From Auanema rhodensis (lineage: Eukaryota; Animalia; Nematoda), in the NCBI GenBank assembly GCA_964057225.1, contig OZ059897.1, forward strand, positions 9,920,001 to 9,984,000: a stretch of 64,000 bases of DNA, read 5' to 3'. The notes beneath the pieces were generated by a model, which was not told where the DNA came from, ran no database searches, and saw only the letters and a program-made list of their open reading frames with translations. How positions within the stretch are numbered: position 1 is the stretch's first letter; each line of letters opens with the position of its first letter. The translations under genes and the position numbers were made by a program. Positions 13,294 to 46,182 of this stretch are shown here, piece by piece.

Positions 13294-13297
<4 letters not shown>

Positions 13298-16580: not shown

Positions 16581-17573
16581 ATGTCGAATATCATTGTTAG
16601 TTTTACAACTGTTTTAACCACAGTATGCATTCTTGGTGCTATTGGTACTGTTGGCTATCTAGTCAATGATATCAACAACTTCTACGATGATGCCATGTCT
16701 GATCTTAGCGAATTCAAAGTGATTAAGACTTTCGTTTGAACTTTCTTTATCTTCATCTACTTTCAGATGTTTGCTAATGACGCCTGGACTAACATGATTG
16801 ATTCTAATGAAGTATCTGTTCGTCGTGAACGTTCTGTTTTCAACAGAAAACATAAGAGACAAAACCGTGGAGGATCTTCTTGCAACTGTGGAGCTCAACC
16901 AAACAACTGCCCAGCTGGACCACCAGGACCTCCAGGACAACCAGGAGAGAGAGGAGATGATGGTATTCCAGGAGAAGCTGGAAGACCAGGATTACCAGGA
17001 ACTGGAATCCCAACCAACCCAGGAGGCAGCGAATGCATCGTGTGCCCAGCCGGAGAGCCAGGACCACAAGGACCAGATGGACCAGCCGGACCACCAGGAC
17101 AAGACGGAGAGCCAGGACAAGACGGAGAAGGTGGACAAGACGGAGAGCCAGGACCACAAGGACCACCAGGAGATGCTGGACAAGATGGACAAGACGGACA
17201 AGACGGACAACCAGGACAACCAGGAGCCAACGGAACTCGCGAAGTCGGAAGACCAGGACCAGCCGGACCAGCCGGAGAACCAGGACAGCCAGGAAACGAT
17301 GGACAACCAGGAGCCCCAGCAGGACCAGGATCTGAAGGACCTGAAGGACCAGCCGGACCAGACGGACAACCTGGAGCCCCAGGAGAAGACGGACAACCAG
17401 GAGCCCCAGGAGAAGACGGACAACCAGGAGGCGATGCCGCTTACTGTCCATGCCCATCTCGCGGAGGACCAGCTCCAGTCCGCGATGCTCCTACTCAGAG
17501 CCGTGGAGACAGCGGATACAGAAGAAGAGTCGCCAAGAAGGTCTATCTTCACCGTCACGCCAAGGCCGCCTAA
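16581..17573 (+). CDS. Cuticle collagen, copy B (exons 16581-16718 and 16767-17573), identical to copy A
   Basis: Same 314-aa protein as copy A. GT..TTTCAG intron at 16719-16766; AATAAA at 17611-17616. Confidence 0.95.
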
Positions 17574-18249
17574 ACGATTTTCCTTTTTTATTTTCATTAA
17601 AACCGTCATCAATAAAAATTTTTTATTCAAAATGTTTATCAAATAGTGCAAAGATTGAAACAATCTCAGCTGATTTTCACATAAGAACGAGTAGTGTAAT
17701 ATGTGATTTCCATTTTTTTTCCCGATATATGGCGCCATTAGAGTTGAAATTAAAATAAAATCACCTAAATAAAGAAAAATAAAAAATATTAAACTGAGAA
17801 TTTAAAAAAAGAAAAGAAAAAGAAGACAAATGAAAGTTTTTATTATAATTCAAAGATATATGTATATATATATATATAGATTTTCTATATGTACTCAATG
17901 AACTCCTCAAATTGTATGTTTTTCAATCAATGTTTACTTAAAATGATTCAATTTATTATTATCTTCATATACATATATATATATATACTATGTATATTGA
18001 CGTCATAAGAGAAAGATGAATGAAGATCTAATTTAACGGATGAAAAATTAAAAAATCAAAAAAGAAAAATGAAGAATTGAGCAATGTTGAACGCATTGAT
18101 TCACAATCAGATAGGTATTCAATTATTAAAAAGTAAAATTGAATTGAGAATTTAAAATTTTTGAAAATAATACATGAAAATGAATAATATTAGATATGTA
18201 TTGATATGTATATTATATAATAAAGTATATTTAGATAACTAAAGAGATG

Positions 18250-18252
<3 letters not shown>

Positions 18253-18297
<45 letters not shown>
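18253..18297. repeat. (AG)n microsatellite
   Basis: About 22 AG units. Confidence 0.95.
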
Positions 18298-18301
<4 letters not shown>

Positions 18302-18673
18302 CAGTCTAAACCAGAAAGAAAGTACGATTAGACGATATTAAGAAAAGTATAACATGTTAAAGAGGACAAGACATACAAGACGACGAAGACAGACAGAGAG
18401 AGAGAACGGAAATAGATGAAAATAGAGGAATACGAGTATGTTGGTAGAGATCGTTCACGTAAACGTTGACTGAGAAGAAAACGTTTTCTCATCAGAACTG
18501 GGTCAAACAGAACAGATTTCGAATGTAATATTGGCCAACCCTAACTATTGACATCCTCTTCCCCCCCCCCCTCCAACATTCATAATTGATTCATCGAACT
18601 TTGAGACGTTTGTCAACTTTTTCTCTTTTTTTTCTTCTATTTGAAAGTTTCATTTCTTTAATAATTCTACAAC

Positions 18674-19683
18674 ATGAGTTGTGAAAAGGTTCGTTTGGCT
18701 TCTTTCTGCTTTTTTTGTTAAAATAATGCTGTAATGCAGGTCGATATGGAGAGAAAAACATCAGTTAATTCAAGAAAATCAGACCAAGAACCGATTTTAC
18801 CATTTTGGGTTGAAACATGGCTTATCACATCAGCTGTTATATGCTTACTGGATGTTGGCTTCACTATGTTACGGCCACATACCATTCCCGGAGGCTCATT
18901 GGCTACTGTGTATTATGGATGTTAGAAGATAATATGCAAACTTCTTTGTAACATTAAACTTTCCAGGGAATATCTATGCTGATGTTGACAAACGTTATGC
19001 TGATCCATATGATCATGTAACATGTGCTACTGGAAGAGTTATGTTGATTGAGATTGTCATGGACTTTATCGTGTTCTTCATGGTTGGTGCAGAGCAAGTT
19101 TTCTTTTTCATCTCAAACTAAGATATTCTCATTCCCACCTTTATTTCTGAAACTTTACCTCTTCCTGAAATGCTCAATAGGTTCTCTTTTGATTTATGAA
19201 TGCTAGAGTTACAACTCAAATATGAGATCAAACATGAGCATACACGGGCAAAATTTTAAAAATTTAATCTTGCAAAACGAAAGTTTTAAAATAAAAAAGA
19301 AGGGAAATTGAATAATTTGAAGGCACGACGACAATCAAGACATACTGTTCTCACGGCATTTACTACATCCTGCTTCGTGTTCTGGAAGACAGTCCTCTAC
19401 CTGGTTCTCTTTGTTGCTCCACCACAAGGAATTTCCTATTTCTCAGAAAATGCTAGCTATTTCCGTATTTTCTGGGTGTTTTGGTTTATGAATGGTAAAA
19501 TTAAATAAAAAGAGAAAATATATTAATATTTTGCTAGGAATCTGGGTTATTATGCCATTTATGGTTATGGTTGCATTATGGAATCGTCTGGCCACGCCAC
19601 ACACAACATGCTCCAGATATGAACTATGCGAAACTGGATTAGTAGGATCTGAAAATATGATTGTTAATGAAAATTCTCATTGA
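18674..19683 (+). CDS. Small 4-TM membrane protein, EXPERA / emopamil-binding-protein-like
   Basis: Five exons giving ...WVETWLITSAVICLLDVGFTMLRPHT.PGG.LA..YYGWNIYADVDKRY...MLIEI...FWKTVLY...MNGIWVIMP. The W..Y..VD.RY, E and NG.W...P motifs resemble EXPERA/EBP proteins; the family call is an inference. Confidence 0.65.
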
Positions 19684-22600
19684 TGTGATCTCTTATAAGC
19701 GTTGGATTTTCTATTAAAATAGTTTGAAAGTTAACAGAAAAACTCTACATCCAGCTGTGTGAATCTATGAATCAGCACGTATTAGAATGTTTTAAAAAAA
19801 ACTTTTTTTTTCCCTTCATTTCTGTTGTGTTGTGCGCAAATTTTTATGAAATACATGAGCAACATATATTTTTTTAATAATTTCTTTATATATTTATATA
19901 TTGATTGAATAAAATTAATTTTATTTTTATATTTTGCATATTTTTCTTCTTTGACAATTTTTATTTTTTTGAATATGCTTTCAGGCGATCACGCAATAAC
20001 TCAGTAGTCAGTCAGGCAGCTATTCATTCGTTCTTTCTTTCATTTCATATATATCGCATATATTCACAAAAAAAAATGTCGTCAGTAGTCATATGAGTCT
20101 TATTAGATTACGGGATATCAATTATCCTGAGACCTACATTACCGTCAAAGAAACTGAGAATAAAGTCTAAGAGAGTACTGAGAGTGTCTCTCAGACAACG
20201 ATGAAGACAACGACAACCACAACGACATTCTTTGTCAGATATCAAACAAAAATCTTTCTTTTTTTCTTGTTGAAAATAACGTTGGCATCTCTTATTGAGA
20301 TCAAATTTCAAGCAACTTTTCTTTCGTAAAGAGGATTTGCAAGAGACAGGGATTACTGCAACATGCTTCGTGGGAATGCCATTAAGTTGTTGATTTTGAG
20401 AGAAATGAGAACAGTTCAATATGAACTTATAATTTGGATAAAACGTAGATTGATTCATATTCTCACGAAATTCATTACATTTCTTCTATTGAAGCCTTAC
20501 ATATATATTCTATATTTACATCTTAATATTCTTTATTCTCTATACATATACATATGTAAATCTTATAAACTTAATATGTTATATCAATTAGATATATGTA
20601 ACTAACTAACTAACTTCGTAGTATATATATATACATATAATCTCTTTGATGTAACCTTTTTTTTCCATATATCATATCTCTCATTTAAAAGCTTAACTAT
20701 ATATATATATATATATAGTTAAGAATGATAATATTTTAATTGTTGTATTAAATGTACGTTTTCAACTCCTTTTTTCCAGCTTCTATCTGTTCTATCTCTC
20801 ATCATTTCTTTTATATTTTCTATGCTCTCCTATTTCCACTCACTTCACTTCAATCGTTCTTCTTTCACAAATTTTCTTCTTCGTGCTCTCAATTTACTCA
20901 TAAATAGGCTTCGTTAACACACCATCTCATGTATATATTGTTAAAAGGAAAAAAAACTCCTTATCCGTATAGCATTAACAGCCATTTATAATTCAAATTT
21001 CTGATGAAATAACAAACGTTTTTTCTTCTTTTTTTTTGCATTTTCTTCCACTTTTCATTAGTTTTTCAATTATTATTATCATTATATTATATATTATATA
21101 TTATAATTTATATATAAATATATAATATCATAGAAGAATAACAACATCACTTAAACTAACTCGTTAGGATGTATCAGAATACATGTATCTGCTATCATAT
21201 CATTTACTCAATTAAGAACTTATGTTTTCAGTTATATCTTAAACCTATTTACAAATCTTTTTCTTCCTTTTTTTTCTTTTTTTCTTAACCTTTTTCTCAA
21301 AATTGATGGTAGTTTCTAAACGTCTGTTTGAATAATGATCTGAGTCCACGTGAGAATTCACGTGAAGAGAGCTTACATTTTTCTTTTCAATCGTCATCAA
21401 TGCAGCGCGGTTGTTTTCTTTTTCTTTCAATTCTCCATATCTCTCACAATCATTCACTCTTATACCTTTACAATCGTTCATTTTATTTCTTTTTTTCTTC
21501 TTTCAAATCATTTGTTTTATATAAATCTTTTCATTTTCTTCCATATATCACTTAATTTCAAATAAAACTCATTGCATAAACGCAATAAAATCCAAAAGAA
21601 ATGTATGCTTAGCAATAAATTTCTATTTGCAATTTGTATAAGTCGAAACTAATATGCTCAATAATTGAGTTATGTTTCCGAGATTTTTCTACTTTCATTA
21701 ACTATTCAACAAAACAATTGATTTTTAAGCATTTTTTATCCAACATCACATGGTTAAACATAATTATCAATATAATAAAATATAAAAACGTAAATGATTT
21801 TAAATATAAAAGCAAAGTGAATATTAGCTGTTTTTCATTTTCGTCAATTACGACTCAAAAAAATATAATATATATAGATAGATAGATAGAAGTATATATA
21901 TATTGTCTCTTAGAAATACTATTAAAATTTTCATCAAATTAATTCCTAGTAGAAGTTGATCCATGAGATCTAACCGGATACGTTTGAGAGAAGGGGAGGC
22001 GTCACATAATGGGCGTGTCACACTTATATGGCCAGATGCAGCTTTTCTTCTATTCGACTTACCGTTTAATTTCAACTTTGTACAACTTATCATACTACTT
22101 CTTTTACATCTTTTTTCATCATTTTAAAACTAAAAACTATTACTACTTAAAAAAAATTCTGAAAATAAAACTATTTCATCAAACATATTGCTCACTAGAT
22201 GTTCAATCTAATTATGCTATGAGAGGAAATAGAAGGGATGAGAGGAGAAGTTTAAAGAGGTTTGCAGTACTATTTTCATTGCTCCCTCTATGGAGCCTGT
22301 TATCCATCTTCTTACTCCGTAAATTCCTTTTCTTTTTTCTTTTTTTTGTTCAGCCTTAAATGTTTTTTTTTCTCTCTCTCTCATCACACGAGCAACAAGC
22401 AATGCGTATTTTCAATTTGTCTTTAATGATAAACGAAAATACAAATATGGATGTGTATATACATATGTGTGTGTGTCTTTTCTTTTTCTTTTTATAATCA
22501 GTATAGTTTAGAAATAAATTAGAAATAACATATTGTATATCATTTACTAAACTGTGAATATTAATTATAATCAAATATATCTTTTCTATTCTTCTATTAT

Positions 22601-27196: not shown

Positions 27197-30100
27197 ATGT
27201 CAGCTGCACACGAAAAGGATCCAGGATGGCAATACCTCCGTCGTTCACGCGAACAAGTACTTGAGGTAAGCTTTAAGTTTATAAAGTTTTAAGCTGTATA
27301 TACTATGCAATATTACTATACTCAATCTAAATTCGTCTATCTATCTATTATACATTCTGATGGAGTTGTTTAGGATCAGTCTAAGCCTTATGATTCAAAA
27401 AAGAATTGTTGGATTCCTGATGCTGAGGAAGGATACATGGCAGCTGAGATCAAATCCACTAAAGGCGATACCACTACCGTAGTTACTATTGCTGGAGTAG
27501 AGGTAATCATCCATCATATCTTCTTATTAATTTTCTTAATTTTATTTAATCTTATTATAGAAAACCGTCAAAAAGGATCTCGTACAAGAAATGAATCCAC
27601 CTAAATTTGAGAAAACCGAAGATATGTCTAATTTGACTTTCCTTAATGATGCCTCTGTTCTTTGGAATCTTCGTGCTCGTTATGCATCTATGCTCATCTA
27701 CGTAAGTTCATTTGGTGCTATTGAAAATTGGAAAATATCTTGAAAACAATTAGCAGATTCACTCTGTTTGTTTCAATCAATAGATAAGTTTGAAAAATAT
27801 AATTTCAATACAGAATCTCAAAGCTCACTGTACTTTTTCTTTGAATGAACTATGGCACTTTGCGAGTGTATAGTGGAAGAAATAGGAAGAAATTAGCTCA
27901 GAAATTATTTTGCCATTGACTTGTCTCATCTCACTTAGGCTTCTCTCAAGAATTTTTAGGATAATCGTCAAATTCAATTGTTCTTAGAACAGTTTGCCTC
28001 TTTCATGCTATCGTTCTCTCTCTATTTTCTCTTCGTGATCTCTATCATAACCTATGCTCTCTCGATCGCCTTTCTTCGCAATGCGACGGAAGACAGCGAG
28101 GCATGGATAAGAGATTTGCAAACAACGAAGATCACCCGACTCACAGTTAGCTGACGACGGCACACTGTGCACGATAGCCGGTTTGAGCACGCCATACACT
28201 GTCGCAGTCCTTCACATCCTCCCCCACATCGTCTACTTATCTGCTGAGAAGAGGACGAAAAAATTCAAAAAGAAACATAGCAAGGGGGAATAATCGAGAT
28301 AAAACTTAATTAGAATGATAATAATTGGGAGAATAAAAAAGTTGATGAAACAACACGAACTTCAAACAACTTTACCATTTTCAGACTTATTCGGGTCTTT
28401 TCTGCGTCGTAATCAATCCATACAAACGTCTTCCAATTTACACCGACTCTGTCGCCCGTATGTTCATGGGCAAGAGACGTACTGAGATGCCACCCCATCT
28501 TTTCGCTGTTTCTGACGAAGCTTACAGAAACATGCTCCAAAACCATGAAAATCAATCTATGCTCATTACCGGAGAATCCGGAGCCGGAAAGACTGAAAAC
28601 ACCAAGAAGGTAGGATTCAGAATCTCGTTCTTTGATTCATTTTGACTTCTTTAGGTAATTGCCTACTTCGCCTCTGTTGGAGCTTCCCAACAAGAGGGCA
28701 ACAAGAACTCCGGAGAAAAGAAGGTCACCCTCGAAGACCAAATTGTACAGACCAACCCTGTCCTCGAGGCCTTCGGTAACGCCAAGACTGTCCGTAACAA
28801 CAACTCCTCCCGTTTCGGAAAGTTCATCCGTATTCACTTCTCCAAGCAAGGAAGACTTGCCTCTTGTGATATTGAACACTACCTCCTCGAGAAATCTCGT
28901 GTTATCCGTCAAGCTCCTGGAGAGCGTTGCTACCATATCTTCTACCAGATCTTCTCTGATTACAAACCTGAGTTGAAGGACAAGCTCCTCCTTAACAAGC
29001 CACTCAAGGATTACTGGTTCGTTGCTCAAGCTGAGTTGACCATCGATGGTATCAACGATACCGAAGAATTCCAACTTACTGACGAAGCCTTCGACATCCT
29101 TAACTTCTCCGAGCAAGAGAAGATGGACTGCTACAAACTTATGGCTGCTCATCTTCACTCTGGAGCCATGAAGTTCAAGCAACGTCCACGTGAAGAACAA
29201 GCTGAAGCTGACGGAACTGATGATGCTGAAAAGGCTTGTGCTATGTACGGAATTGATGTTGACCAATTCATCAAAGCCTTGGTTTCCCCAAGAGTTAAAG
29301 TAGGAACTGAATGGGTTTCCAAGGGACAGAATGTTGACCAAGTTAACTGGGCTATTGGAGCTATTGCCAAGGGTCTGTACGCTAGAATCTTCCACTGGTT
29401 GGTTAAGAAGTGTAACTTGACTCTTGATCAACAAGGAATCAACCGTGATTACTTCATTGGAGTACTTGATATCGCTGGTTTCGAAATCTTCGATGTAAGC
29501 TTTTCCATATTCAACTTCATTCTAATGAATTTTCTAATTTTAGTTCAACTCCTTCGAACAGCTCTGGATTAACTTCGTAAACGAGAAGCTCCAACAGTTC
29601 TTCAATCACCACATGTTCGTTCTTGAACAGGAAGAATATGCTCGTGAAGGTATCCAATGGACTTTCATCGATTTCGGTCTTGATCTCCAAGCCTGTATCG
29701 AACTTATTGAGAAGGTTTGTCAACTCTTCTCTTCAACTTATTCTGATTTTCTCCTCTTTTAGCCACTTGGTATCATCTCTATGCTCGATGAAGAATGTAT
29801 TGTACCAAAGGCTACTGATATGACTTTGGCTCAGAAGCTTGTTGAACAACATTTGGGCAAACACCCCAACTTCGAGAAGCCCAAGCCACCAAAGGGAAAG
29901 CAAGCCGAAGCTCACTTTGCCATGCGTCACTACGCTGGTACTGTCCGCTACAACGTCAGCAACTGGCTCGAGAAGAACAAGGACCCCCTCAACGACACTG
30001 TCGTCTCCGTCATGAAACAATCCAAGGCCAACGAGCTTTTGGTTGAAGTCTGGGGAGATTACACTACCCAGGAAGAGGCTGCTGCTCAAGCCAAGAGTAA

Positions 30101-33100
30101 GTTAGAAAAATCAAAGATGCGATAATAACAGAGAAACTTAGGCGGTGGAGCAAAGAAGAAGGGTAAGTCTGGATCTTTCATGACTGTATCCATGATGTAC
30201 CGTGAATCCCTCAACAAGCTCATGACTATGCTTCACAAGACCCATCCTCACTTCATCCGTTGTATCATCCCCAACGAGAAGAAGCAAGCTGGTAAGAATA
30301 CCCTGAGGCTATTGTGATATTTTATTTTCTTCTTTTAGGTATGATCGATGCTGCTCTTGTACTTAACCAGTTGACCTGTAACGGTGTACTTGAAGGTATC
30401 CGTATTTGCCGTAAAGGTTTCCCCAACAGAACCCTTCACCCCGACTTCGTCCAGCGTTACGCTATCCTTGCCGCAAAGGAAGCCAAGTCTAGCAAAGACC
30501 ATAAAGTTGCTGCTGGAGCTATTCTTGACGCCATCGTTGCTAGGAAGAGACTTGACAACGAACAATTCAGAATTGGACACACCAAGGTCTTCTTCAAGGC
30601 TGGAGTTGTTGCCCATATGGAAGATCTTCGTGACGAAAGACTCAACGATATCATTACTGGCTTGCAGTGCGCTATTCGCGCTCACAACGCTCTTGCTGAT
30701 TCCGGAGCTCGCAGACGTCAACTCAACTCTTACATCATTCTTCAAAGAAACATCCGTTCTTGGTGCATTCTCCGCACATGGGATTGGTTCTTACTCTTCG
30801 GTAAGATCAGACCTCAACTCAAATGCGGAAAGATGGCTGAAGAAATGTCAAAGATGGCTGAAGAGCACAAGTCTCTCGAAAGTGCCGCTGCTAAGGTTGA
30901 AGCCGAGCGTAAGGCTAAGGAAGAGAGCTACAACAAATTGAATGCCGACAAGGCAAAATTGTTGGAACAGCTCGAAATGACCAAGGGAGGATCTGCTGCT
31001 ATTGAAGAGAAGCTCACCAGATTGAATGGTGCTAAGCAGGAGTTGGAGAAGGGTCTTAATGATATCAGTGATAGACTCTCTGAGCAAGAAGATAGAAATG
31101 CCGATCTTGAGAAGCAGCGCAGAAAAGCTCAACAAGAAGTCGAGAATATGAAGAAGAGTATCGAATCTGTTGATTCCAGTCTTCTTAAATCCCAGGAAGA
31201 GAAGCAAGCTAAGGAAAACCAAATTCGCTCTCTTCAAGATGAGATGAACTCTCAGGATGAATCTGTTGCTAAGTTGAACAAGGAGAAGAAGCATTTGGAA
31301 GAAGTTGCTCGTCAACTTGTTGAAGATTTACAAGCTGAAGAAGCCAAGATGGCTCAAGCTAACCGTTTAAAGGCTAAGCTTGAACAAACTCTTGATGAAA
31401 TGGAAGAATCTGTTGAGCGTGAGAGACGTATTCGCGCTGATACTGAAAAATCCAAGAGAAAGGTTGAGTCCGAACTCAAGGCTGCTCAAGAAAATCATGA
31501 AGAAATGACTAGGATTAAACAGGAGGCCGAGTCTTCTCTTAAGAAGAAGGAAGCTGACATCCATGCCCTTAGCGTTCGTATTGAGGATGAGCAAGCTATG
31601 GCTAACCGATTAACTCGTCAATCTAAAGAAAACGCTGCTCGCATTATCGAGATTGAAGATGAGCTCGAGCATGAGCGTCAAACTCGTGCTAAGGCCGATC
31701 GCGCCCGTGCTGAGCTTCAACGCGAACTTGATGACTTGAATGATCGTCTTGATGAGCAAAACAATCAAATGCAAGCTCAACTTGAGCTCAACAAGAAGAA
31801 GGATTCTGAACTTATTAAGAGCAGACGCGACTTGGAAGAAAAGAACATGGCTCATGAAGATCAACTTGGATCTCTTCGCAAAAAGAACAACGATACCATC
31901 GCTGATTTAACCAATCAATTGGATGCTTTACAAAAGAACAAAGCTAAGCTTGATAAGGAAAAGGGAGGCCTCCAGAAGGACCTTGACGACTTGAATGTTC
32001 AAGTTGATCAGGAAACTAAGGCTCGTGTTGAACAGGAACGTCTTTCCAAACAATACGAAATTCAAGTTGCTGAGCTTCAACAGAAGGTTGATGAGCAATC
32101 CCGTCAAATCGCTGATTACTCCAGCTCTAAGGGACGTCTTGTCAATGACAACAGTGATCTCCTTAGACAAGTTGAAGAACTCGAAGTTCAGCTTGGAGCT
32201 CTCAATCGTGCTAAGGCTGCCCTTAGCAGTCAACTGACTGAGGCTAAGAAGGCGGCTGAAGACGAGACCCACGAGCGCCAAGACTTCAACGCCACCTGCA
32301 AGAACTTGGAGCACGAAATCGATCAGTGCCACGAACTTCTTGAGGAAGAAATTAATGCCAAGGACGACATCCAAAGACAACTCAGCCGTATCAATTCCGA
32401 AATTTCTCAATGGAAGGCCCGTTATGAGGGAGAAGGACTTGTCGGAGCCGACGAATTGGAAGACCTTAAGAGAAAACAAATGGCTCGCGTCATGGATCTC
32501 CAAGAAGCCCTTTCTGCCGCTCAAAACAAGGTTATCTCTCTTGAGAAGGCTAAGAGTCGCCTTCTTCAAGATACCGAAGATGCTCGGTCTGATGTCGATA
32601 GACACCTTACTGTCATCGCTGCCCTTGAGAAGAAACAAAGAGCCTTCGACAAGATTGTTGAAGACTGGAAGCGCAAGGTTGATGATATTCAAAAGGAAAT
32701 TGATGCAACCACTCGCGACTCTCGCAGCACATCTACCGAAATCTTCAAGCTTCGCTCTGCCATGGATAATTTAACCGAGCATATTGAGACTCTTCGTCGC
32801 GAGAACAAGGGATATTCCCAAGAGATTCGTGACCTCAATGAACAAATCGGACAGGGAAGCCGCAGCTACCATGATATTCAAAAGTGCGTCAAGCGCTTGG
32901 AACAAGAAAAGGAGGAACTCCAACACGCTCTTGATGAGGCTGAGGCTGCTTTAGAAGCCGAGGAAAGCAAGGTTCTTAGATCTCAAATCGAGGTTCAACA
33001 AATTCGCTCTGAGATCGAGAAGCGTATCCAAGAGAAGGAGGAAGAGTTCGAGAACACCCGCAAGAACCACCAACGTGCTCTTGAATCCATCCAAGCTTCC

Positions 33101-34403
33101 TTGGAAACTGAAACCAAGAGCAAGGCTGAACTCCTTCGCGCTAAGAAGAAGTTAGAGAGCGATATCAACCAACTTGAAATTGCCCTTGATCATGCTAACA
33201 AGGCCAATGTTGATGCTCAAAAGAACCTTAAGAGATTATTCGACCAGGTATGAAGTTATTTCAGAATATGATATTCTTATTCAAAACATTTTAGGTCAAA
33301 GAGCTCCAATCTCAAGTTGATGAAGAACAAAGACGCCGTGAGGAAATCCGTGAGAACTACCTGTCTGCCGAGAAACGTCTCGCTGTTGCCTTGTCTGAAT
33401 CTGATGACTTGGCCAACAGAATCGAAGCTGCTGAGAAGGTAAATATGACAGAATTTGCAAGTTTTCAAAAATTTCTTTCAGCACAAGAAGCAATTGGAAA
33501 TCGATCAAGGAGATCTTAAATCTCAGAACACTGAATTGATCGCCAACAATGCTGCTTTGTCTGCTATGAAACGTAAGGTTGAGAATGATGTTCAAATCGC
33601 CAGAGTAAGTTTAATGGAAGGAAACCTATCTAATATTCTGTTTATAGAACGAATTGGATGATATTCTCAATGAGCTTAAGGTTTCCGAGGAACGTGCCCG
33701 CAAGGTATAGTTGTTGTGTGTCAATATCATACTAAATGACTGATGATTGAAGGCTGCTGCTGACGCTGACCGCCTATCCGAAGAAGTCAGACAAGAACAG
33801 GAGCACGCTATGCATGTTGACAGACAACGCAAAGGACTTGAACTTACCGCCAAAGAATTACAACAGAAGATCGATGATGCCGAACGCGCTATGGTTCAAT
33901 GTAAGCAGCAAAAATCAAGATATGAACTTTAAAAATCATTTTCAGTCGGACAAAAAGCCCTTGCCAAGGTTGAAGACCGTATTCGCGTGTTGGATGCCGA
34001 ATTCCACTCCGAACAACGCCGTCACCAAGAAGCCATCAAGGGTGTTGCCAAGCAAGAACGTCGTTCTCGCGAACTCCAATTCCAGGTTGAAACTGAGTAC
34101 AACAGATGATTCTTAACATTGTGCTTGCTTATAGGTCGAGGAAGATAAGAAAGCCTTCGACCGCCTACAGGAAATGGTAGAGAAATTGCAACAAAAGATC
34201 CGCGTACAGAAGAGACAAATCGAGGAAGCTGTAAGAACTCATCAAACTGATCTATTTGTAAAGAAACTGTTTTACAGGAAGAAGTAGCAACGCAGAACTT
34301 ATCTAAGTTCCGACAGATACAATTAGCTCTCGAGAACGCAGAAGAACGTGCCGAAGTAGCCGAGAATAGCCTTGTTCGTATGCGTGGACAGAAGCGAGTA
34401 TAA
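27197..34403 (+). CDS. let-75: Pharyngeal-type muscle myosin heavy chain (MYO-1 / MHC D)
   Basis: [20 protein letters not shown]; ASVLWNLR; P-loop GESGAGKT; IQ/neck [25 protein letters not shown]; short C-terminus [27 protein letters not shown]. These match remembered MYO-1-specific sequence rather than UNC-54 or MYO-3. Confidence 0.85.
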
Positions 34404-37356
34404 CTTTATCGTTCTCTCCTTCTCTTTATATTAGATTCCAACAATATTTCTCAAATAAAACAAAAACAAGATTCTGTGAGGAAATTGTAAAATAACAAAA
34501 CTGATGTTCATTACAAAAATTTTCTTTTTTCTCTGAGTTATTTCAAAGAAGAATTATAAGAAGTAGAGTCTCGTCGATTAGATGATAATAAGCCCTCGTT
34601 GTCTTGATGTGAAATCTCTAATCAATTGGATGAAGACGTTTGACGGTTTGCTCCACTGCTCCGACGTCGTATCAACCAATAGTGTTTCACATCGCCAATT
34701 TTCAACGATCGATTCTCCTTTTAATCATTATTCTTTATATTCATTTTGTGTTTTTTTCTTACTTTTATATTTCTGATAAATAAAATAATGAGGGTGTATT
34801 AAAGGAAATATTGGTCTTTTCTTTGAAATTTCGTGTAATTTCATTTCATACACATATAAGAAATCAGATTATAAAATAGATTAATTCAATAGATTTATAG
34901 CTTTTTCTTCCTTTTTTTTTCAAAAAAATTCAATAAAATTTTCATTTTTTTCATCATTTACGTTATACAGAAGCGGAAGAAGGAGGTGATGAAGGTGATG
35001 ATATGATGTGAAGGGGAACGATAGACTGCCTGTCTACTGAACTGCTCTCTGTTTCTATAAACTGCGCCTTCTATCTGTAACATTCAAAAGAGAAGATAAG
35101 TCAAGATTGAGAAGAATGAGAGAGGGAATGAAGAAGGATAAAGAGAGAGATTGAGATTGAGAGAGATTGAGGTGAAGAGAGAGGAAAAACTAAGAAAACG
35201 CTTGGAAAGAATAAATAAGAAGAAGCACACGAGTAGAACTAAAGGAGCAGAGGCGGAAATTGAGGAGGTGGAAAAAGGAGAAAGAGGGAGAGAACGAGTG
35301 AGAACCACATAACGCATGACAGCCGTGCTTTAGATTTCACTAAAGCCGAAAGATAATCTACATTTTTACCAATATAGTTTTGAATATAGTTCTCTTCATC
35401 AACGGGTATAGCATACGCTGAACACAAAGAACTTGTAGTTTGTTTTAAAATTAAAAAAATTCGATAAAAATAAACAATGAAAGCAAGAGTTATGTTGATA
35501 GAGATAAACACAAATGTTTTGTTTTTTATCCTTTAAAAACAAATGAATTATCACGTCAAGCTTCAACTTGTATAATACTTTGTAATTGTAATTTTGGTGA
35601 AAAGAAATGAGCAGTATAATATGTTGAATCAACAAGAACAGTTGCCATCTTGCACACACTTGCAAGTCAAAGACTAATTAATTTAATTAAATATATCTTT
35701 TAATTATTTACATAAAATCTTAGTAAATACTTGACTATATATCCAATATTATTAAATCTCCCTCTTGGAATATTTTTTCTTTTCTTTTTTTTTCAAAATT
35801 AGTTCATTTCAGAAGTTTTTATGTCGATTACGAGCCAATCATTTAGGGTACACGGTGTAATGGCATCTATCATGAGGAGGAATCCAAATGCTGGAGCTCC
35901 TACTTCTGGCCATCTCTCTCTCTCTCTCTTTTTTGTCTCTCTTTATCTCACTCTCTCTCTCTCTATCTTCTCTCTTAAACATCAAACAAAACCACATTCA
36001 CTTCCGCTATTATAATTATTTTTTTGATCATGAAGTAAAACAATGTTATTTATACTAAAACATAAATTATAATTCAAAGTTTTAAGTTTTCAAGTTGAAA
36101 AAAAGTTTTTTTAATAAATTACAAAAACATTGATTAGATCACAAGTTCAAATAATGTTTCTTATAAACATACTATAACACTTCTTCTTCATTGATATGGT
36201 TCTCATTTCTTGATAACAAACCATCTTTCTTTGAGAAACAACATCGAAAATACGTTTATCATGGATTCTCTTCATCCGCCGGAATGTTGATATTGGTTCA
36301 AAATACTTCAAGGAATGTTATGAAATGTTTGAGAATCAGTAGAGCTCAACTTGCAAAAAAACGCAAAAACTTGAATGAATTTATTATATTTATCAAGTTG
36401 AAGGGAGGAAATATAATTAAATTATAAGAATAATACAATACAATACTGAAATACTTAAATAAAACAAATTAATATTAGAATAGTATGAAAAGGTAATTCG
36501 TAGTTCAAACAGGTGTCATCATCTTAACAAAACTTTTTTCACGTATCTTGCTAATACTAAACATCGCCTTTCCGTCTTTTTCTCTTTATCTTTCTCTTCT
36601 TTTTCAGTTTTCTATACCACTTCTTCTTCTACTTCTTCTAAAGCTTTCTTCATTTCCATTTCTCTAAATTTTCAAGAAAATCTCAAAAAACTATTCAGAA
36701 ACTTTTCAACAGATCTACATCTGTCTTCTACTGCTACGAGTAAAAAAAAATTTCAGATTCCAACTGTTGTTCACTTCCTTTTACCAAATATTTTACTGTA
36801 ATATTTGAGTGATGAACATTGGCATTGAAAAAATGGCTTTTTCAATTAGATGTACGGATATGTTAAAGTAAAATAGAAGAAAGAATGATGAAAATGGTTA
36901 GTGAGAGTATAAATATCTGAGCATTTTCTTGTGAAAAGTTTCGTTCTTGAAGTTATTCATAATATCTCTTTCTTCACTTTACCGATCCCCTTAGGAGATC
37001 ACTTCGGATTTTATTGAAAGAACCGCATGTGGCAAGAATTGTTGTAGATGAACAAGTGAAGAAGAAGAAGAGAAAATGAGCAGGAAGAAACAGAAAGTAG
37101 TCCAACTTTGACAGAGAAATCTTCACATCGACTAGAGAAACGAAAAAGAAATTCTAACATTGAAGATAAAAAGAGAGAAAAGAAGAGAGATTCATAAAGA
37201 TAGAGAATATCAGGAGATAGGAAACACAGTTGTTTTGTTGCTGGACACGAGATAAGCTTCATGTAAGCATTGCTATGTCTTTGAATGTAGAAAAGATATG
37301 GTGAAGAGAGGATAGGATGGAATGTTCACAAGGTAATGCAATGATAGAAGAAGATA

Positions 37357-37465
37357 GAGAGAAAATGAAGAATACAGAGAGAGAAAGAGAGAGAGAGAAA
37401 GAAAGAGAGAGAGAAGAGATAGAGATAGAGATATGTAGATAGATAGATTAAGGGAGAGAGAGAGA
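37357..37465. repeat. GA/GATA-rich low-complexity tract upstream of unc-54
   Basis: Visible purine-rich microsatellite mosaic. Confidence 0.8.
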
Positions 37466-38176
37466 GTGAAATATAAAGAGAAAAGATAAAGAGAATTAAC
37501 AAATCAAGAGAAGAACAGAATGATGTATTTATATATTTATGTATATACAATGTATATATATATATATATACATTATTTGTATAGATAGATAGATATATAG
37601 TATTGTACGTAATTTTAATAATTCATACATATACAGTTAACTATATGCATATAAATTAACTTTGAATGAAAAAGCTGTAAACGAAGAATAGTTTAGGGGA
37701 ATTATACCAAAAAATTCAAATCTGATTACCCATACCCCATACCCAATACCGTTTACAGTGAAATCAAAAGTATCATAGTTTTAAAACAAATCAGTTAAAC
37801 CTACTTGATATACGGAACTGATTAATACTCTAATTCACTTTAATAAATCAAACTTCGTTGAATGTAGGATTGCATCCCAAATTAAAAATTTTAGAACACT
37901 TACGGTATGTCATCATTCACTGTTTCATGGGTTACTGTATTTACAGTCTTCTGTATTCATTTTTGATGTTTGAAAATCAGTGTGTTTCGTACACTCTCCA
38001 ACAGTAATCATTTCTCTTGCTGGCTAAGTTTCCTGGAATCTCAGACATTTAGACATTACAGTAGAAGTGAGAGACGAAGAGGAGGAGGAGGGAACTTGAA
38101 CAGGAGGTGTGGCATCGCCTGAGGCTTTCCTGCCATTGCACGGGCAGACTCTCCACGAAGAAGCCGCATTTCCAAG

Positions 38177-41100
38177 ATGGAACACGAGAAGGATCCCGGA
38201 TGGCCGTACCTGCGTCGTACTCGCGAGCAAATGCTCGAGGTTTGAACCCATTTTGAGCCTTTTTTTCCTTTTTTAAATTTTTTTAAATTTTACAATTTAT
38301 TGTTTTTCTTTGGTTTAGGACCAGAGCAAGCCATACGATTCCAAGAAAAATTGCTGGATCCCAGATGCCGAAGAAGGATACGTTGCTGGTGAGATCACGG
38401 CCACTAAGGGAGATCAAGTCACTGTTGTCACCGCCCGTGGAAATGAAGTAACTTATTCTTATATTTCTTTCTAATTTAAATTAAAATTATTATTTTTTGA
38501 AATTCTTATTTCTAAATATTTTAAATTTAATTATAACTTGAGAATAATTGAAAAAAGGCTAAATTGATTTTGATTAATAATAGTATTCTATCTGCTATAT
38601 ATTCACATTGAAATATTCTATTACCGTAATTTTATTGGAATAATTTCATATACTGTATTCATATTTCTGTTTACAGTAATGCTTTTTGAAAAAAATTGAA
38701 TGAGAAAGGAAATTTGAAGTTGAAAATTACGATTTAAACTTACATCATGCTTACTTTTTCATATTGACTCTTTGTACATAAAATTCTAAAACATCTCCCT
38801 CCCCCACTTTTTCCCCTCTTCTTTCTCTATTACTGGCAGCTGTGAGTTTCGTTTACGACCATAGTCAAAAGGCAAGAAGAGAGGAAGGGCGATATGGGAT
38901 AAGGAGAAGAAAGATAGAAGCATCAGGTTAGAGCATAGGAAGAAGATAAGAGATATGAGTAGAAATTGAGAGAGTATGAGAGACATTGAGGTGAGAAGAA
39001 TGAGCCAAGAGGGAGGGAGTTCGTTAAGAAAAGAAAGATGAAGACTATGCCAAGAACAAGAGAAAAGAGAATGTGAGTCTATGAAAATGTGTAATAGTTG
39101 TCGCTGCCGTAGGCGAATATCAGAGAAAAACCCATGGTTTGAATTTCGCTTAAAACTTCAAAGTTGCAATAAAAACGGGAAAATTCAGAAATAATATAAT
39201 AGCCTAAAAACTTTTTTCAATTATTCCAAGAAATATGACAAAAAAAAGTTAAAATGTAACTGTGAAAATGGATCTGGAATTATAATATTTCTTTGTAGAT
39301 CACCCTCAAGAAGGAGTTAGTTCAAGAAATGAACCCTCCAAAATTCGAGAAGACTGAAGACATGTCCAACTTGTCTATGCTTAACGACGCCTCTGTACTT
39401 CACAACTTGCGTGCCCGTTATGCTGCTATGCTTATCTACGTAAGTTTTAAGTTTTCATTAATGATATTGAAGTCGAAGAACGAAAGAACGATGCAAATGA
39501 TACTGTATGGATGTGTCCATTCAAAGATGAAAAACAAAAGCTTTTGTTGTTGCATTCATATCTTAGTATTCATTCGCTACCGGCTATTACAATTGTGCCC
39601 ATCTTGTGTCAAGCAGAGCAAAGGAATCTCAACATCTGCCTCAGTAATCGTTCTCACTCCTTCTATCACTCGTTTCTCTTTCTTTATCTCTCATCTTAAT
39701 TTCTCTCACTAGTTGAGAACATTTGTTGTTCAGTAGTAGGATATCAAAGAAGAAAAAGAGAGAAAGATAGAGAGAGCGAGAGAAAGAGCGAGAGAAGCCA
39801 GAAGAGAGAGTGTTCTTATTCACAGAAAAGAGAATAAGAGAGAAAAAAGAAAAAATATAAGAGAAATTGGAAGAGATTTAGGCAGAAAAAGAAAAAAGAG
39901 AAAAGAGCACAAGCTAGAAGATAGAAGTGTACGACTGGCATTTTTGTTTTTCCTCAGACACAAAAGATGAAAGCAGCTTAAACAGCCGCGGTAACAGAGA
40001 TGGTTATAAAGTAAGAGAGAGAGATATCGAGCTTAATGTACAACGTTCGATTTCCTAGAAAAATGTTGGCAAAAACTTTAAGGACAGTTGAAGGGAGATG
40101 AGGAAGCAAACGAGTTAAGACGGGAAAATTTAGAAAATTATACGATATCAGGGTTTCGATTTGGAAATAAATATAAATATGCTTTCAGACTTATTCGGGT
40201 CTTTTCTGCGTCGTAATCAATCCATACAAACGTCTTCCAATTTACACCGACTCTGTCGCCCGTATGTTCATGGGCAAGAGACGTACTGAGATGCCACCCC
40301 ATCTTTTCGCTGTTTCTGATCAAGCTTACAGAAACATGCTTCAAGATCATGAAAATCAGTCTATGCTCATTACCGGAGAATCCGGAGCCGGAAAGACTGA
40401 AAACACCAAGAAGGTAGGATTCAGAATCTCGTTCTTTGATTCATTTTGACTTCTTTAGGTAATTGCCTACTTCGCCTCTGTCGGAGCTTCCCAACAGGAA
40501 GGCAACAAAACTGAAGGAGAGAAGAAGGCTACTCTCGAAGACCAAATTGTACAGACCAACCCTGTCCTCGAGGCCTTCGGTAACGCCAAGACTGTCCGTA
40601 ACAACAACTCCTCCCGTTTCGGAAAGTTCATCCGTATTCACTTCTCCAAGCAAGGAAGACTTGCCTCTTGTGATATTGAACACTACCTCCTCGAGAAATC
40701 TCGTGTTATCCGTCAAGCTCCTGGAGAGCGTTGCTACCATATCTTCTACCAGATCTTCTCTGATTTCAAGCCAACTCTCAAGAACGACCTTCTCCTTGAC
40801 AAACCACTCAAGGATTACTGGTTCGTTGCTCAAGCTGAGTTGACCATCGATGGTATCAACGATACCGAAGAATTCCAACTTACTGACGAAGCCTTCGACA
40901 TCCTTAACTTCTCTGGTCCTGAAAAGATGGACTGCTACAAGCTTATGGCTGCTCTTATGCACATGGGTAACATGAAGTTCAAGCAACGTCCACGTGAAGA
41001 ACAAGCTGAGCCAGATGGTACTGAAGAAGCTGAAAAGGCCGCCAATATGTTCGGAATCGACCCTGAAGGTTTCCTCAAGGCTCTTACCAAGCCACGTGTA

Positions 41101-44100
41101 AAGGTCGGAACCGAATGGGTATCCAAGGGACAGAACATCGAACAAGTCAACTGGGCTATCGGAGCCATGGCTAAGGGTCTCTACTCCCGTGTGTTCAACT
41201 GGTTGGTTAAGAAGTGTAACTTGACTCTTGATCAACAAGGAATCAACCGTGATTACTTCATTGGAGTACTTGATATCGCTGGTTTCGAAATCTTCGATGT
41301 AAGCTTTTCCATATTCAACTTCATTCTAATGAATTTTCTAATTTTAGTTCAACTCCTTCGAACAGCTCTGGATTAACTTCGTAAACGAGAAGCTCCAACA
41401 GTTCTTCAATCACCACATGTTCGTTCTTGAACAGGAAGAATATGCTCGTGAAGGTATCCAATGGACTTTCATCGATTTCGGTCTTGATCTCCAAGCCTGT
41501 ATCGAACTTATTGAGAAGGTTTGTCAACTCTTTTCTCCAACTTATTCTGATTTTCTCCTCTTTTAGCCACTTGGTATCATCTCTATGCTCGATGAAGAAT
41601 GTATCGTACCAAAGGCTACTGATATGACTTTGGCTCAGAAGCTTGTTGAACAACATTTGGGCAAACACCCCAACTTCGAGAAGCCCAAGCCACCAAAGGG
41701 AAAGCAAGCCGAAGCTCACTTTGCCATGCGTCACTACGCTGGTACTGTCCGCTACAATTGCAGCAACTGGCTCGAGAAGAACAAGGACCCCCTCAACGAC
41801 ACTGTCGTCTCCGTCATGAAACAATCCAAGGCCAACGAGCTTTTGGTCGAAGTCTGGGGAGATTACACCACCCAGGAAGAGGCCGCACTTAAGGCTAAGG
41901 GTTTGTGATTCTGATAAATTTATGGATTTGCTATGTTTTCTTTTTTAGAAGGCGGTGGAGGAAAGAAGAAGGGTAAGTCTGGATCTTTCATGACTGTCTC
42001 TATGCTTTACCGTGAATCCCTCAACAACCTCATGACTATGCTTCACAAGACTCATCCTCACTTCATCCGTTGTATCATCCCCAACGAGAAGAAGCAATCT
42101 GGTAAGAATACCCTGAGGCTATTGTGATATTTTATTTTCTTCTTTTAGGAATGATCGATGCTGCTCTTGTACTTAACCAGTTGACCTGTAACGGTGTACT
42201 TGAAGGTATCCGTATTTGCCGTAAAGGTTTCCCCAACAGAACCCTTCACAACGACTTCGTCCAGCGTTACGCTATCCTTGCCGCCAAGGAAGCTAAGTGC
42301 GACGATGACAAGAAGAAGTGCGCTGATGCTATCATGGGACGCCTTGTCAATGAAGGAGTTCTTCAAGAGGATAACTTCCGTGTCGGTCTTACTAAGGTCT
42401 TCTTCAAGGCCGGAGTTTTGGCTCACCTTGAAGACGTTCGTGACGACAAGCTTTCTTCCATCATGATTGGATTCCAATCCAACATCCGTTGGTACTTGGG
42501 ACTCACCGACCGCAAGCGTCGTATGGAACAAAGAGCCGGACTCCTCATCGTCCAGCGTAATGTCCGCTCCTGGTGCACCCTCCGTACCTGGGAATGGTTC
42601 AAGCTTTACGGAAAAGTCAAGCCACTCCTCAAGGCCGGAAAGGAAGCCGAAGAGCTCGACAAGATCAACGACAAGGTTAAGGCTCTTGAAGCTGACCTCG
42701 AAAAGGAATCCAAGCTCCGCAAGGAACTTGAAGACAGCTCTACCAAGCTCTTGGAAGAGAAGAACAGCTTGTTCACCAACTTGGAAAGCACCAAGGGACA
42801 ACTTTCTGAAGCTGAAGAGCGTCTTGCTAAGCTTCAAGCTCTTAAGGGAGATGCTGAGAAGCAACTTTCTGTAAGTTTAATTTGCGACTACTCGTATTGA
42901 AACTTTAATTTCAGGAATTGAACGACCGTTTGGCCGATCAAGAAGACCGTAACTCTGACATCCAGAGAGCCAAGAAGAAGGTTGAGGCTGAGGTTGAATC
43001 CCTCAAGAAGCAGATCCAAGACCTCGAAATGAGTCTCCGCAAGTCTGAGTCCGAGAAGCAATCTAAGGATCACCAGATTCGCTCCCTCCAAGACGAAATG
43101 CAACAACAAGACGAAAGCATCGCCAAGCTCAACAAGGAGAAGAAGCACCAAGAGGAAATCAACCGCAAGTTGATGGAGGATCTTCAAGCTGAAGAAGACA
43201 AGACCAACCATACCAACAAGGTTAAGGCTAAGCTCGAGCAAACTCTCGATGACCTCGAGGATTCCCTTGAACGCGAGAAGAGATCCCGCGCTGATCTTGA
43301 CAAGCAAAAGAGAAAGACTGAGGGAGAACTCAAGATTGCCCAAGAAAACATTGATGAGGCTGCCCGCCAACGTCATGACTTGGAAAACAACTTGAAGAAG
43401 AAGGAGTCTGAACTCCACTCTGTCAGCAGCCGTTTGGAAGACGAGCAAGCTCTTGTTAGCAAGCTCCAACGCCAAATCAAGGAAGGACAAAGCAGAATCT
43501 CTGAGCTCGAAGAGGAACTCGAGAACGAACGCCAATCCCGCTCCAAGGCCGACCGTGCTAAGGCTGACCTTCAGCGCGAATTGGAAGAGCTCGGTGAGCG
43601 TCTTGATGAACAAGGAGGAGCTACCGCCGCTCAAGTTGAGGTCAACAAGAAGAGAGAAGCTGAGCTCGCCAAGCTTCGCCGCGATCTTGAGGAAGCCAAC
43701 ATGAACCACGAAAACCAACTCGGTGGTCTTCGCAAGAAGCACACTGATGCCGTTGCTGAGCTTACTGATCAACTTGATCAGCTCCAAAAGCAAAAGGCTA
43801 AGATTGAGAAGGACAAGACCCAGATCCAACGTGAAGCTGAAGACCTTGCTGCTCAACTCGATGGTGAAACTTCTGCCAAGCTCAACAACGAAAAGCTCGC
43901 CAAGCAATTCGAACTCCAATTGACTGAGCTTCAATCTAAGGCTGATGAACAAGCCCGTCAACTCCAAGACTTCACCTCCATCAAGGGACGTCTTCACAAC
44001 GAGAACGGAGACCTCGGCAGACAACTCGAGGATGCTGAATCTCAAGTCGGACAATTGAACAGATTAAAGAGCCAACTTACCAGCCAATTGGAAGAGGCTC

Positions 44101-46182
44101 GCCGTACCGCTGACGAGGAAGCTCGTGAACGCCAAACTCTTGCCGCTCAAGCCAAGAACTACCAACACGAGGCTGAGCAACTCCAGGAAAGCCTTGAAGA
44201 AGAAATCGAAGGAAAGAACGAAATCCTTCGTCAACTCAGCAAGGCCAATGCTGAAATCCAACAATGGAAAGCAAGATTCGAGGGAGAAGGACTCATCAAG
44301 GCTGATGAGCTTGAGGATGCCAAGAGAAGACAGGCCCAGAAGATCAACGAGCTCCAGGAGGCTCTCGATGCCGCCCACTCCAAGATCGCTTCCCTCGAGA
44401 AGACCAAGTCTCGTCTCGTTGGAGATCTTGATGACGCTCAGGTTGATGTTGAGCGTGCCAACGGATTCGCTGCTGCTCTTGAGAAGAAGCAAAAAGGATT
44501 CGACAAGGTCATCGACGAATGGAAGAAGAAGACCGACGATCTTTCTGCCGAGCTTGACTCTGCTCAACGTGATGCCCGCAACACCGCCACCGATCTCTTC
44601 AAGGCTAAGAATGCCCAAGAAGAGCTCATGGAGGTTGTCGAGGGACTCCGTCGTGAGAACAAGAGCTTGAGCCAAGAAATCAAGGATCTTACCGACCAAC
44701 TCGGAGAAGGAGGACGCTCCGTCCACGAGATGCAGAAGATCATCCGCCGCCTCGAAATCGAGAAGGAGGAACTTCAGCACGCTCTTGACGAGGCTGAAGC
44801 TGCCTTGGAAGCCGAAGAGAGCAAGGTTCTCCGCGCTCAAGTTGAAGTTTCCCAGATCCGCTCCGAAATCGAGAAGCGTATCCAAGAGAAGGAGGAAGAG
44901 TTCGAAAACACCCGCAAGAACCACCAACGTGCTATGGATTCCATGCAAGCTTCTTTGGAAACCGAAGCCAAAGGAAAGGCCGAACTTCTCCGCGTCAAAA
45001 AGAAGCTCGAGGCTGACATCAACGAGCTCGAAATTGCCCTTGATCATGCTAACAAGGCCAACGCTGATGCCCAAAAGAACCTCAAGAGATACCAAGAACA
45101 AATCCGCGAACTCCAACTCCAAGTTGAGGAGGAGCAACGCAACCGCGATGATATCAGAGAACAATTCTTCAACGCCGAGAAGCGCGCCACCTTACTCCAA
45201 TCCGAGAAGGAAGAACTCTTGGTTGCCAACGAGGCCGCTGAACGTGCTCGCAAGCAAGCTGAGTACGAAGCCGCTGACGCTCGTGACCAAGCCAACGAAT
45301 ACTCTGCCCAAGCTAGCTCTTTGGCTGCTGCCAAGAGAAAGCTCGAGGGTGAACTTCAAGCCATCCACGTAAGACTTTATTTCAGGTTTCAAAATCATAA
45401 TTATTATCATTTCAGGCTGATCTCGATGAGACTCTTAACGAGTTCAAGGCTGCTGAAGAACGCAGTAAGAAGGCTATGGCTGATGCTGCCAGACTTGCTG
45501 AGGAACTCCGCCAAGAACAAGAACACTCTCAACACGTCGACCGTCAACGCAAGGGACTCGAACAACAACTTAAGGAAATGCAAGTTAGACTCGATGAAGC
45601 CGAAGCTGCTGCCCTCAAGGGAGGAAAGAAGGTGGATTGACAAAATGATAATGTTGTTTATAACAAAATTCATTTACAGGTTATTGCCAAGCTCGAGCAA
45701 CGTGTCCGTGAGCTCGAATCCGAACTCGACTCTGAACAACGCCGTTACCAAGAAGCCAACAAGAACCTCGGACGTGCCGACCGCCGTGTCCGTGAACTTC
45801 AATTCCAGGTTGATGAAGATAAGAAGAACTTCGAAAGACTCCAGGACTTAATTGACAAGCTCCAAAACAAATTGAAGACCCAAAAGAGACAAATCGAAGA
45901 GGCTGTAAGTTTATTTCCAAATTCCCTATTCTGATCTATTGAAATCGGTCATCTCATGATGTTTGTTTACAGGAGGAAGTTGCCAACACCAACCTCCAGA
46001 AATACAGACAAATTCAACACCAATTGGAAGATGCCGAAGAGAGAGCCGACGTTGCCGAAAACTCCCTCTCCAAGATGCGCGCCAAGTCTCGCTCATCTGC
46101 TTCCGTTGCCCCAGGTCTTCAGACATCTCAGTCTGCTGCTGTTCTCCGATCACCATCCCGTGCCCGTGCTTCTGACTTCTAA
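38177..46182 (+). CDS. unc-54: Body-wall muscle myosin heavy chain B
   Basis: [52 protein letters not shown]; full motor and rod; diagnostic non-helical tailpiece [34 protein letters not shown]. Confidence 0.93.

Follow-up and report, generated by a model that had tools for sequence, protein, structure and literature searches.

How can two muscle myosin genes that have been separate since an ancient duplication share introns that are identical letter for letter? This question is raised by a window of 64,000 nucleotides from the nematode Auanema rhodensis (GenBank assembly GCA_964057225.1, contig OZ059897.1, positions 9,920,001 to 9,984,000 of the forward strand; all coordinates below are those of the window unless another locus is named), in which the orthologues of let-75/myo-1 and unc-54 follow each other on the same strand. 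A preliminary description of the window had noticed long identical tracts between the two motor domains and read them as ongoing gene conversion that selection keeps away from the surfaces tuning each isoform. The gene-conversion reading is strongly supported by silent-site divergence, introns, trees, a permutation test, and the loci of other species: As judged from these sequences, the approximately 2.1 kb motor region of the tandem is very probably homogenised by recurrent short-tract interlocus gene conversion at the DNA level. The part played by selection is only partly supported. The two genes are as follows:

27197 to 34403, plus strand: gene A, the let-75/myo-1 orthologue, with 16 exons and 1933 amino acids; pharyngeal-type myosin heavy chain D
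38177 to 46182, plus strand: gene B, the unc-54 orthologue, with 13 exons and 1960 amino acids; body-wall myosin heavy chain B

Gene B lies 3.8 kb downstream of gene A, and the two are called let-75 and unc-54 in the following. Their exon models were built locally from orthologue templates (P0121 for let-75 and P0135 for unc-54), GT/AG junctions, and open frames. The joined models entered local comparisons only; database searches were run with single exons or database proteins, and the Pfam domains are the precomputed ones of homologues. The translated models contain the motifs [17 protein letters not shown] and DIAGFE, and the exon model of let-75 ends without a non-helical tailpiece. The top PDB match of the exon 28655–29494 is 6QDJ, the C. 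elegans UNC-54 motor (residues 187–468, E = 5e-158), and the best match to the large exon of let-75 in the protein collection reaches at most 84% identity. A comparison of the region with a phage database returned no match. The gene names used in the preliminary description are right as orthology, as judged by rod identity and the rod tree: The let-75 rod is 82–84% identical to LET-75/MYO-1 proteins, including C. elegans Myosin-1, the unc-54 rod is 90–92% identical to UNC-54 proteins, and a rod tree rooted with insect Mhc places the former in the LET-75 clade with a support of 100 and the latter in the UNC-54 clade with a support of 99. The two rods are 57% identical to each other, and rod trees place the window species, a rhabditid, near Caenorhabditis and the strongylids. 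With orthology judged outside the converted segment, both genes are predicted to encode class II muscle myosin heavy chains.

The homogenised motor core occupies one segment in each gene:

28379 to 30488, plus strand: homogenised motor core of let-75, residues ~114–736, with the P-loop, switch I/II, the relay, the SH helices, and the start of the converter
40183 to 42298, plus strand: homogenised motor core of unc-54, delimited by blastn, a base-by-base alignment, and the list of identical runs

These segments form a single blastn match of 92.55% identity over 2122 columns, and the remaining similarity between the two genes is limited to short patches of 72–84%. Eleven perfect runs of 45–335 nucleotides each sum up to 1437 nucleotides. 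At the 5′ edge, identity sets in 6 nucleotides inside an intron, at the TTTCAG acceptor that closes a long unalignable intron; at the 3′ edge, it ends near 30488, after approximately the first 15 codons of the converter, in a part in which the two proteins are strongly diverged. Within the core, identical tracts alternate with divergent islands (let-75 coordinates; island residues are numbered after UNC-54 in PDB 6QDJ and MYH7):

28379 to 28515, plus strand: tract 1, 137 nucleotides identical to 40183–40319, starting where the long intron ends, at its 3′ splice site
28516 to 28555, plus strand: small divergent block near residue 160
28556 to 28677, plus strand: tract 2, 122 nucleotides, identical; end of the P-loop exon and the whole intron 28610–28654
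28678 to 28729, plus strand: loop 1 island, 11 differing columns
28730 to 28961, plus strand: tract 3, 232 nucleotides, identical; switch I region
28962 to 28999, plus strand: island at residues ~291–303, 13 differing columns
29000 to 29109, plus strand: tract 4, 110 nucleotides, identical
29110 to 29393, plus strand: upper 50-kDa (upper-50K) island, 74 differing columns; loop 4 and the cardiomyopathy-loop region
29394 to 30043, plus strand: tract 5, 650 nucleotides with 6 differences; switch II, relay, and lower 50K, with the introns 29495–29543 and 29715–29762
30044 to 30151, plus strand: loop 2 island, with unrelated introns (30097–30141 and 41901–41948, 52% identity)
30152 to 30488, plus strand: tract 6, 337 nucleotides with 12 differences; SH helices and start of the converter, with the intron 30292–30338

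The two copies have loops 1 and 2 of unequal length. The long tracts noticed earlier, introns included, are borne out by the blastn match, the alignment, and the run list; the divergent blocks named there (loop 1, 28961–28996, the upper 50-kDa segment, and loop 2) are all recovered, and the block 28516–28555 is added to them.

Four of the five core introns are 96–100% identical between the genes, and the N-terminal and loop-2 introns are at a background of 52–57%. Intron 28610–28654 matches 40414–40458 in 45 of 45 positions, 29495–29543 matches 41299–41347 in 49 of 49, 29715–29762 matches 41519–41566 in 46 of 48, and 30292–30338 matches 42102–42148 in 47 of 47—the very counts that had been given in the preliminary description. 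That description had also named what would speak against its reading, namely intron sequences conserved by selection across species. This objection does not hold: Between species, the tract introns are 40–70% identical, which is the level of shuffled sequences (mean 60%, maximum 71%).

Silent sites show the same partition. The proportion of differing silent sites (pS) between let-75 and unc-54 is 0.05 in the tracts, 0.54 in the islands, 0.76 in the N-terminal exons, and 0.69 in the rod; over the same tract codons, orthologues differ with a pS of 0.50–0.67. The distribution of differences was assessed by a permutation test in an own implementation of the GENECONV type—not the GENECONV program—on sites polymorphic across ten sequences. 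The longest difference-free run spans 99 polymorphic sites, and the maximum reached by 10,000 permutations confined to the core is 66 (p ≤ 1e-4). The p value is likewise ≤ 1e-4 in Caenorhabditis auriculariae and Pristionchus pacificus, 0.0026 in Nippostrongylus brasiliensis, and 0.013 in Caenorhabditis remanei. A silent-site comparison and a check of this type had been proposed as ways of examining the earlier reading, and both the contrast in pS (0.05 in the tracts against 0.54–0.69 in the islands and the rod) and the permutation result speak for it. Protein constraint does not by itself lower pS, because rod residues 1531–1650 (32906–33236 and 44760–45090), the most conserved rod segment with 84% DNA identity and a proportion of differing nonsynonymous sites (pN) of 0.08–0.15, retain a pS of 0.4–1.0 in all five species and hence serve as a control for such constraint. 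The same pair of rod segments was considered as a second conversion tract and rejected, its pS of 0.4–0.6 in the window and its low pN reflecting protein constraint only.

The phylogenetic position of the two genes changes along their length. On tract DNA, the two genes of each of the five species are sisters (support 100/99–100), and monophyly of let-75 is rejected at a log-likelihood cost of 573 (approximately unbiased (AU) test, p = 9e-58). The rod tree unites the orthologues, with a support of 100/100. The 460 tract residues place the two window proteins as sisters, with the LET and UNC sequences mixed by taxon, and the 152 island residues unite the 16 LET-75 proteins in one clade (100/97) that occurs in 100% of the bootstrap trees. 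The per-segment trees thus come out as the preliminary description had predicted, with tracts grouping by species, and the rod and the island proteins by orthology. Its view of the two genes as ancient paralogues agrees with the rod tree rooted on insects, which has the form (UNC,(LET,MYO-2)) at 99–100 and unites UNC-54 with spirurid and ascarid Myosin-4; on this tree, the duplication of let-75 and unc-54 predates the rhabditid/spirurid split. The motor core rooted on insects yields (MYO-2,(UNC+LET mixed)) at 99 instead. The conflict is genuine: LET goes with UNC in the core and with MYO-2 in the rod. An ancient head swap of myo-3, suggested by raw identities, was discarded, since the rooted trees mostly explain these identities by fast pharyngeal rods. 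In the motor core, rhabditid UNC-54, LET-75, and MYO-2 are found together (88), to the exclusion of spirurid and ascarid Myosin-4, the partners of UNC-54 in the rod. There is a weak hint that head sequence of myo-2 may also have been exchanged in the past.

The same mosaic recurs in other nematodes. Their loci were fetched via annotated orthologues, and each protein was mapped back exactly to its exons:

N. brasiliensis: tandem, ~16 kb apart; 2.3 kb match at 86.9%, with introns 93% and 88% identical
Haemonchus contortus: tandem; 2.3 kb match at 83.5%
C. auriculariae: tandem, 6.7 kb apart; an intron with 43 of 45 identical positions, and several windows of 20 codons at a pS of 0
P. pacificus: tandem, 2.9 kb apart; single exons 97–99% identical, introns unrelated
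C. remanei: 6.3 Mb apart on one chromosome; differing intron positions

The homogenised region of N. brasiliensis begins at the same splice site and ends at the same place as in the window, and its upper-50K and loop-2 blocks are again divergent. Tract-only pS amounts to 0.05 in the window, to 0.21, 0.29, and 0.30 in the other tandem species (H. contortus not included), and to 0.48 in C. remanei with its dispersed genes. In the latter, windowed pS and intron comparison revealed no near-zero pS windows, no similar introns, and no recent tract; the core pN of this pair is 0.09 and its core pS 0.49, compared with 0.69 in the rod. The C. elegans let-75 and unc-54 genes presumably lie far apart as well, on chromosome I. 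For H. contortus, an apparent conversion of the N-terminal region (99% identity) was rejected as an annotation chimera: The annotated unc-54 (P0134; GCA_041937105.1, CP149424.1) starts at the let-75 coordinate and spans 40 kb (10001–50784 of the fetched locus, with let-75 at 10001–19708), so that the model borrows the first exons of let-75, and the own N-terminal exons of unc-54, at ~43642–44208 of the fetched locus, are only 77–79% identical. N. brasiliensis and H. contortus also have the surroundings of the tandem in common: let-75 is preceded by a seven-transmembrane receptor gene, and unc-54 is followed by an EMC1-like gene on the other strand.

Among the species compared, the presence or absence of a core intron tracks the species and not the gene. 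In the two Caenorhabditis species, neither gene has the residue-189 intron. C. remanei and P. pacificus carry the residue-264 intron in each of their two genes, and the other three species have it in neither. The residue-687 intron (phase 1), which is the one identical in 47 of 47 positions in the window, is missing at this place from the two genes in N. brasiliensis, C. auriculariae, C. remanei, and P. pacificus; this intron was either gained in the window lineage and copied to the partner by conversion, or it is what repeated paired losses elsewhere have left. The pattern suggests concerted intron loss or gain via conversion. Because the core intron positions track the species and the residue-687 intron is identical in both genes, the copying is attributed to the level of DNA.

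In this mechanism, close neighbours in the same orientation exchange sequence repeatedly, and each gene has otherwise diverged since the duplication, in its N-terminal exons, the larger part of the converter, the neck, and the rod. The exchange sets in where homology does and is bounded on the 5′ side by the long non-homologous intron and on the 3′ side by the strongly diverged converter, and five blocks escape homogenisation: the one near residue 160, loop 1, residues 291–303, the upper-50K actin-binding block, and loop 2. The process is old and appears to be still active where the tandem has been kept—in the window species, N. brasiliensis, H. contortus, C. auriculariae, and P. pacificus—and it has run down in C. 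remanei with its genes 6.3 Mb apart. Third-position GC content (GC3) is 0.54 and 0.53 in the tracts of the two genes; in the unconverted N-terminus, it is 0.56 in unc-54 and 0.34 in let-75. To judge by these values, unc-54 is probably the net donor.

Three other origins of the identical tracts were weighed against gene conversion. In an assembly or polishing artefact, reads of one paralogue would have corrected the other, or a collapsed repeat would have been expanded. Polishing, however, cannot equalise unrelated introns, and the introns in question stand at random-level identity between species; in addition, scattered single differences remain in the tracts (one intron matches in 46 of 48 positions), the islands lie in frame with orthologue-specific residues, and the same bounded pattern is present in independent assemblies of four other species, all of which makes such an artefact extremely improbable. 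A single recent replacement or partial re-duplication of the 2.1 kb motor region, followed by fast divergence of the islands, would account for the one sharp start, the one sharp end, and the zero differences in most tracts. It would not account for island residues specific to let-75 and unc-54 that are common to 15 and 13 other species, respectively: Given these shared residues, the LET island clade at 100/97, and an island pS of 0.54, the islands have not been recently overwritten. The tracts also differ in age, from 0 differences up to 12 in 337 nucleotides, and the degree to which this region is homogenised varies across four other lineages, so that one event is a very unlikely origin.

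The third alternative dispenses with exchange altogether and invokes strong purifying selection, the biased codon use of strongly expressed muscle genes, and functional elements within introns. The motor core is indeed the most constrained part of any myosin, and even the dispersed pair of C. remanei has a low core pN and a core pS below that of its rod. Yet the tract pS of 0.05 compares with 0.50–0.67 between orthologues under the same constraint, the rod segment with equally low pN keeps its high pS, the introns are not conserved between species, and LET monophyly on the tracts is rejected as described above. For the tandem species, this explanation is already refuted by the silent-site and intron data, and overall it retains hardly any probability.

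Several observations nevertheless weigh against recurrent gene conversion as formulated here, or against parts of it. The near-identical exons of P. pacificus are short (matches of 77 and 95 nucleotides) and flanked by introns at a background of 35–57%, and simple long DNA tracts do not account for these unrelated flanks; very short conversion tracts or an exchange via a spliced intermediate could be behind them. The short island DNA yields AU p values of 0.31 and 0.57 and does not reject a clade of the window pair (0.31), and the islands therefore owe their orthology signal to the protein tree. The GC3 pattern that points to unc-54 as the donor would be expected equally under GC-biased conversion. 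Species-specific codon usage could add to the grouping by species at saturated silent sites, which matters for the weak signal of C. remanei. Finally, the exchange is deduced from a comparison of assembled sequences.

Why the islands escape conversion is a separate question. The upper-50K and loop-2 blocks are divergent in all five species examined, though converting tracts flank both sides, and the islands carry residues that are fixed differently in the two orthologue groups, besides grouping by orthology as protein (100/97). Within the upper-50K island, H354, V398, and S399 are fixed in 16 of 16 LET-75 proteins, where 13–14 of 14 UNC-54 proteins have L, T, and K. Selection on a few isoform-specific residues may accordingly keep the upper-50K island distinct, aided by the poor substrate that diverged DNA offers. 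The islands could also persist without selection: The least constrained segments would drift apart, and their mismatches would block heteroduplex extension in a self-sustaining manner. This rival, which concerns the role of selection and not the conversion itself, has much to recommend it and falls only somewhat short of probable. Orthologue pN is 0.08–0.16 in the islands versus 0.03–0.07 in the tracts, which makes the islands—two to four times faster—the fastest-evolving parts of the core, and low homology alone could for that reason block conversion there. Consistently paralogue-specific positions are few (three to seven in the core), the lengths of loops 1 and 2 differ between the copies, and the island at residues 286–302 has been overwritten in N. 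brasiliensis without loss of either gene. A pure homology barrier is thus a live alternative, given the speed of the islands and this one erased island. It is opposed by the fixed residues at 354, 398, and 399 and by the escape of the upper-50K and loop-2 blocks in every species examined despite converting tracts on both flanks.

Selection is therefore plausible for the upper-50K block and only partly supported as the protector of islands in general. The earlier proposal that selection rejects tracts over isoform-tuning surfaces is plausible where H354, V398, and S399 are concerned, and its extension to all islands is weakened by the fast island pN and the overwritten island of N. brasiliensis. 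A similar reduction applies to the idea of the mosaic as a map of the residues that make a myosin pharyngeal or body-wall. The islands do carry diagnostic residues, but the map is thin: Among 612 core residues, three positions are diagnostic by a strict definition (354, 398, and 399) and seven by a relaxed one (376, 391, 634, and 655 in addition), compared with 11 in residues 726–850 and 127 in the rod.

Both genes are textbook genes of muscle genetics, and the mosaic bears on what distinguishes their products. As far as sequences can tell, the catalytic cores of the pharyngeal and the body-wall motor would be effectively interchangeable in many nematodes. Candidates for isoform specificity within the core would be narrowed to residues 354, 398, and 399, less strictly to 376, 391, 634, and 655, and to the two surface loops; other determinants would sit in the N-terminal domain, the converter, the neck, and the rod. 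Since head and rod topologies conflict, nematode motor-domain trees are misleading. Tandem and dispersed pairs together may offer a clean comparative system for the limits that distance and divergence set on ectopic conversion, and for introns gained or lost in concert in two genes. A broader reading, advanced tentatively and rather doubtful as yet, regards the tandem as a single unit of evolution whose two genes share a motor cassette: One catalytic core would have been kept by recombination for hundreds of millions of years, with few isoform-specific modules, namely the N-terminal domain, approximately five upper-50K residues, loops 1 and 2, the converter, the neck, and the rod. If true, this arrangement would be the recombination-based counterpart of the arthropod solution with one gene and alternative exons, and the break of the tandem in the C. 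remanei lineage would have freed the motors to diverge—a natural before-and-after experiment on specialisation.

Full-text literature searches, with the original 1989 gene-family paper outside them, returned no paper that links gene conversion to unc-54 and myo-1/let-75, and the main comparative study of metazoan Mhc genes makes no mention of conversion between let-75 and unc-54. The C. elegans UNC-54 motor ("Myosin-4", PDB 6QDJ and 9H6S) has nearly the same numbering as the window protein and provides a structural frame for tracts and islands; it comes from a different species, and loop 1 is two residues shorter in the window.

The vertebrate MYH clusters share several features with the nematode tandem: class II genes in tandem on the same strand, non-reciprocal exchange, and paralogues that partly group by species. 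The cardiac alpha/beta pair MYH6/MYH7 is a further case of conversion. For the tandem skeletal myosin heavy chain clusters of vertebrates, conversion is described by Moore et al. 1992, J Mol Biol 223:383, as cited in bioRxiv 10.1101/2025.10.28.684953, and this preprint itself reports homogenisation by conversion. In contrast to these clusters, the nematode pair is deeply diverged (pharyngeal and body-wall, with rods 57% identical), the exchange is limited to one domain, its boundaries recur in distant species, and the internal islands group by orthology across 16 species.

Among the conversion paralogues of Caenorhabditis are hsp-16, act-1/act-3, col-12/col-13, and zim/him-8, together with those of the survey by Semple and Wolfe (reviewed in PMC3966223, a text in which myosin does not occur). 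According to this review, conversion in Caenorhabditis enters short introns, favours close neighbours in the same orientation, and drops with distance, and conversion-resistant regions are read as functionally diverged. The inclusion of short introns, the closeness of the partners, and the effect of distance are found again in the myosin pair. The Caenorhabditis cases are mostly young or near-identical duplicates; here, an ancient pair is involved over only one third of its length, in a pattern that can be followed across five genera.

In arthropods, a single Mhc gene with clusters of mutually exclusive exons arrives at the same outcome, a common motor with few isoform modules, which are located near the nucleotide pocket, the actin-binding surface, and the converter (PMC3912159, PMC2257972). 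Nematodes have lost such exon clusters and use separate genes (PMC3912159). The analogy is one of outcome only, as the arthropod mechanism is alternative splicing of one gene, whereas the nematode one keeps two genes partly identical by recombination. The kind of process found at this locus is well known; what stands out is the age of the pair, the limitation of the exchange to one domain, the recurrence of its boundaries, and the contrast between tandem and dispersed genes.

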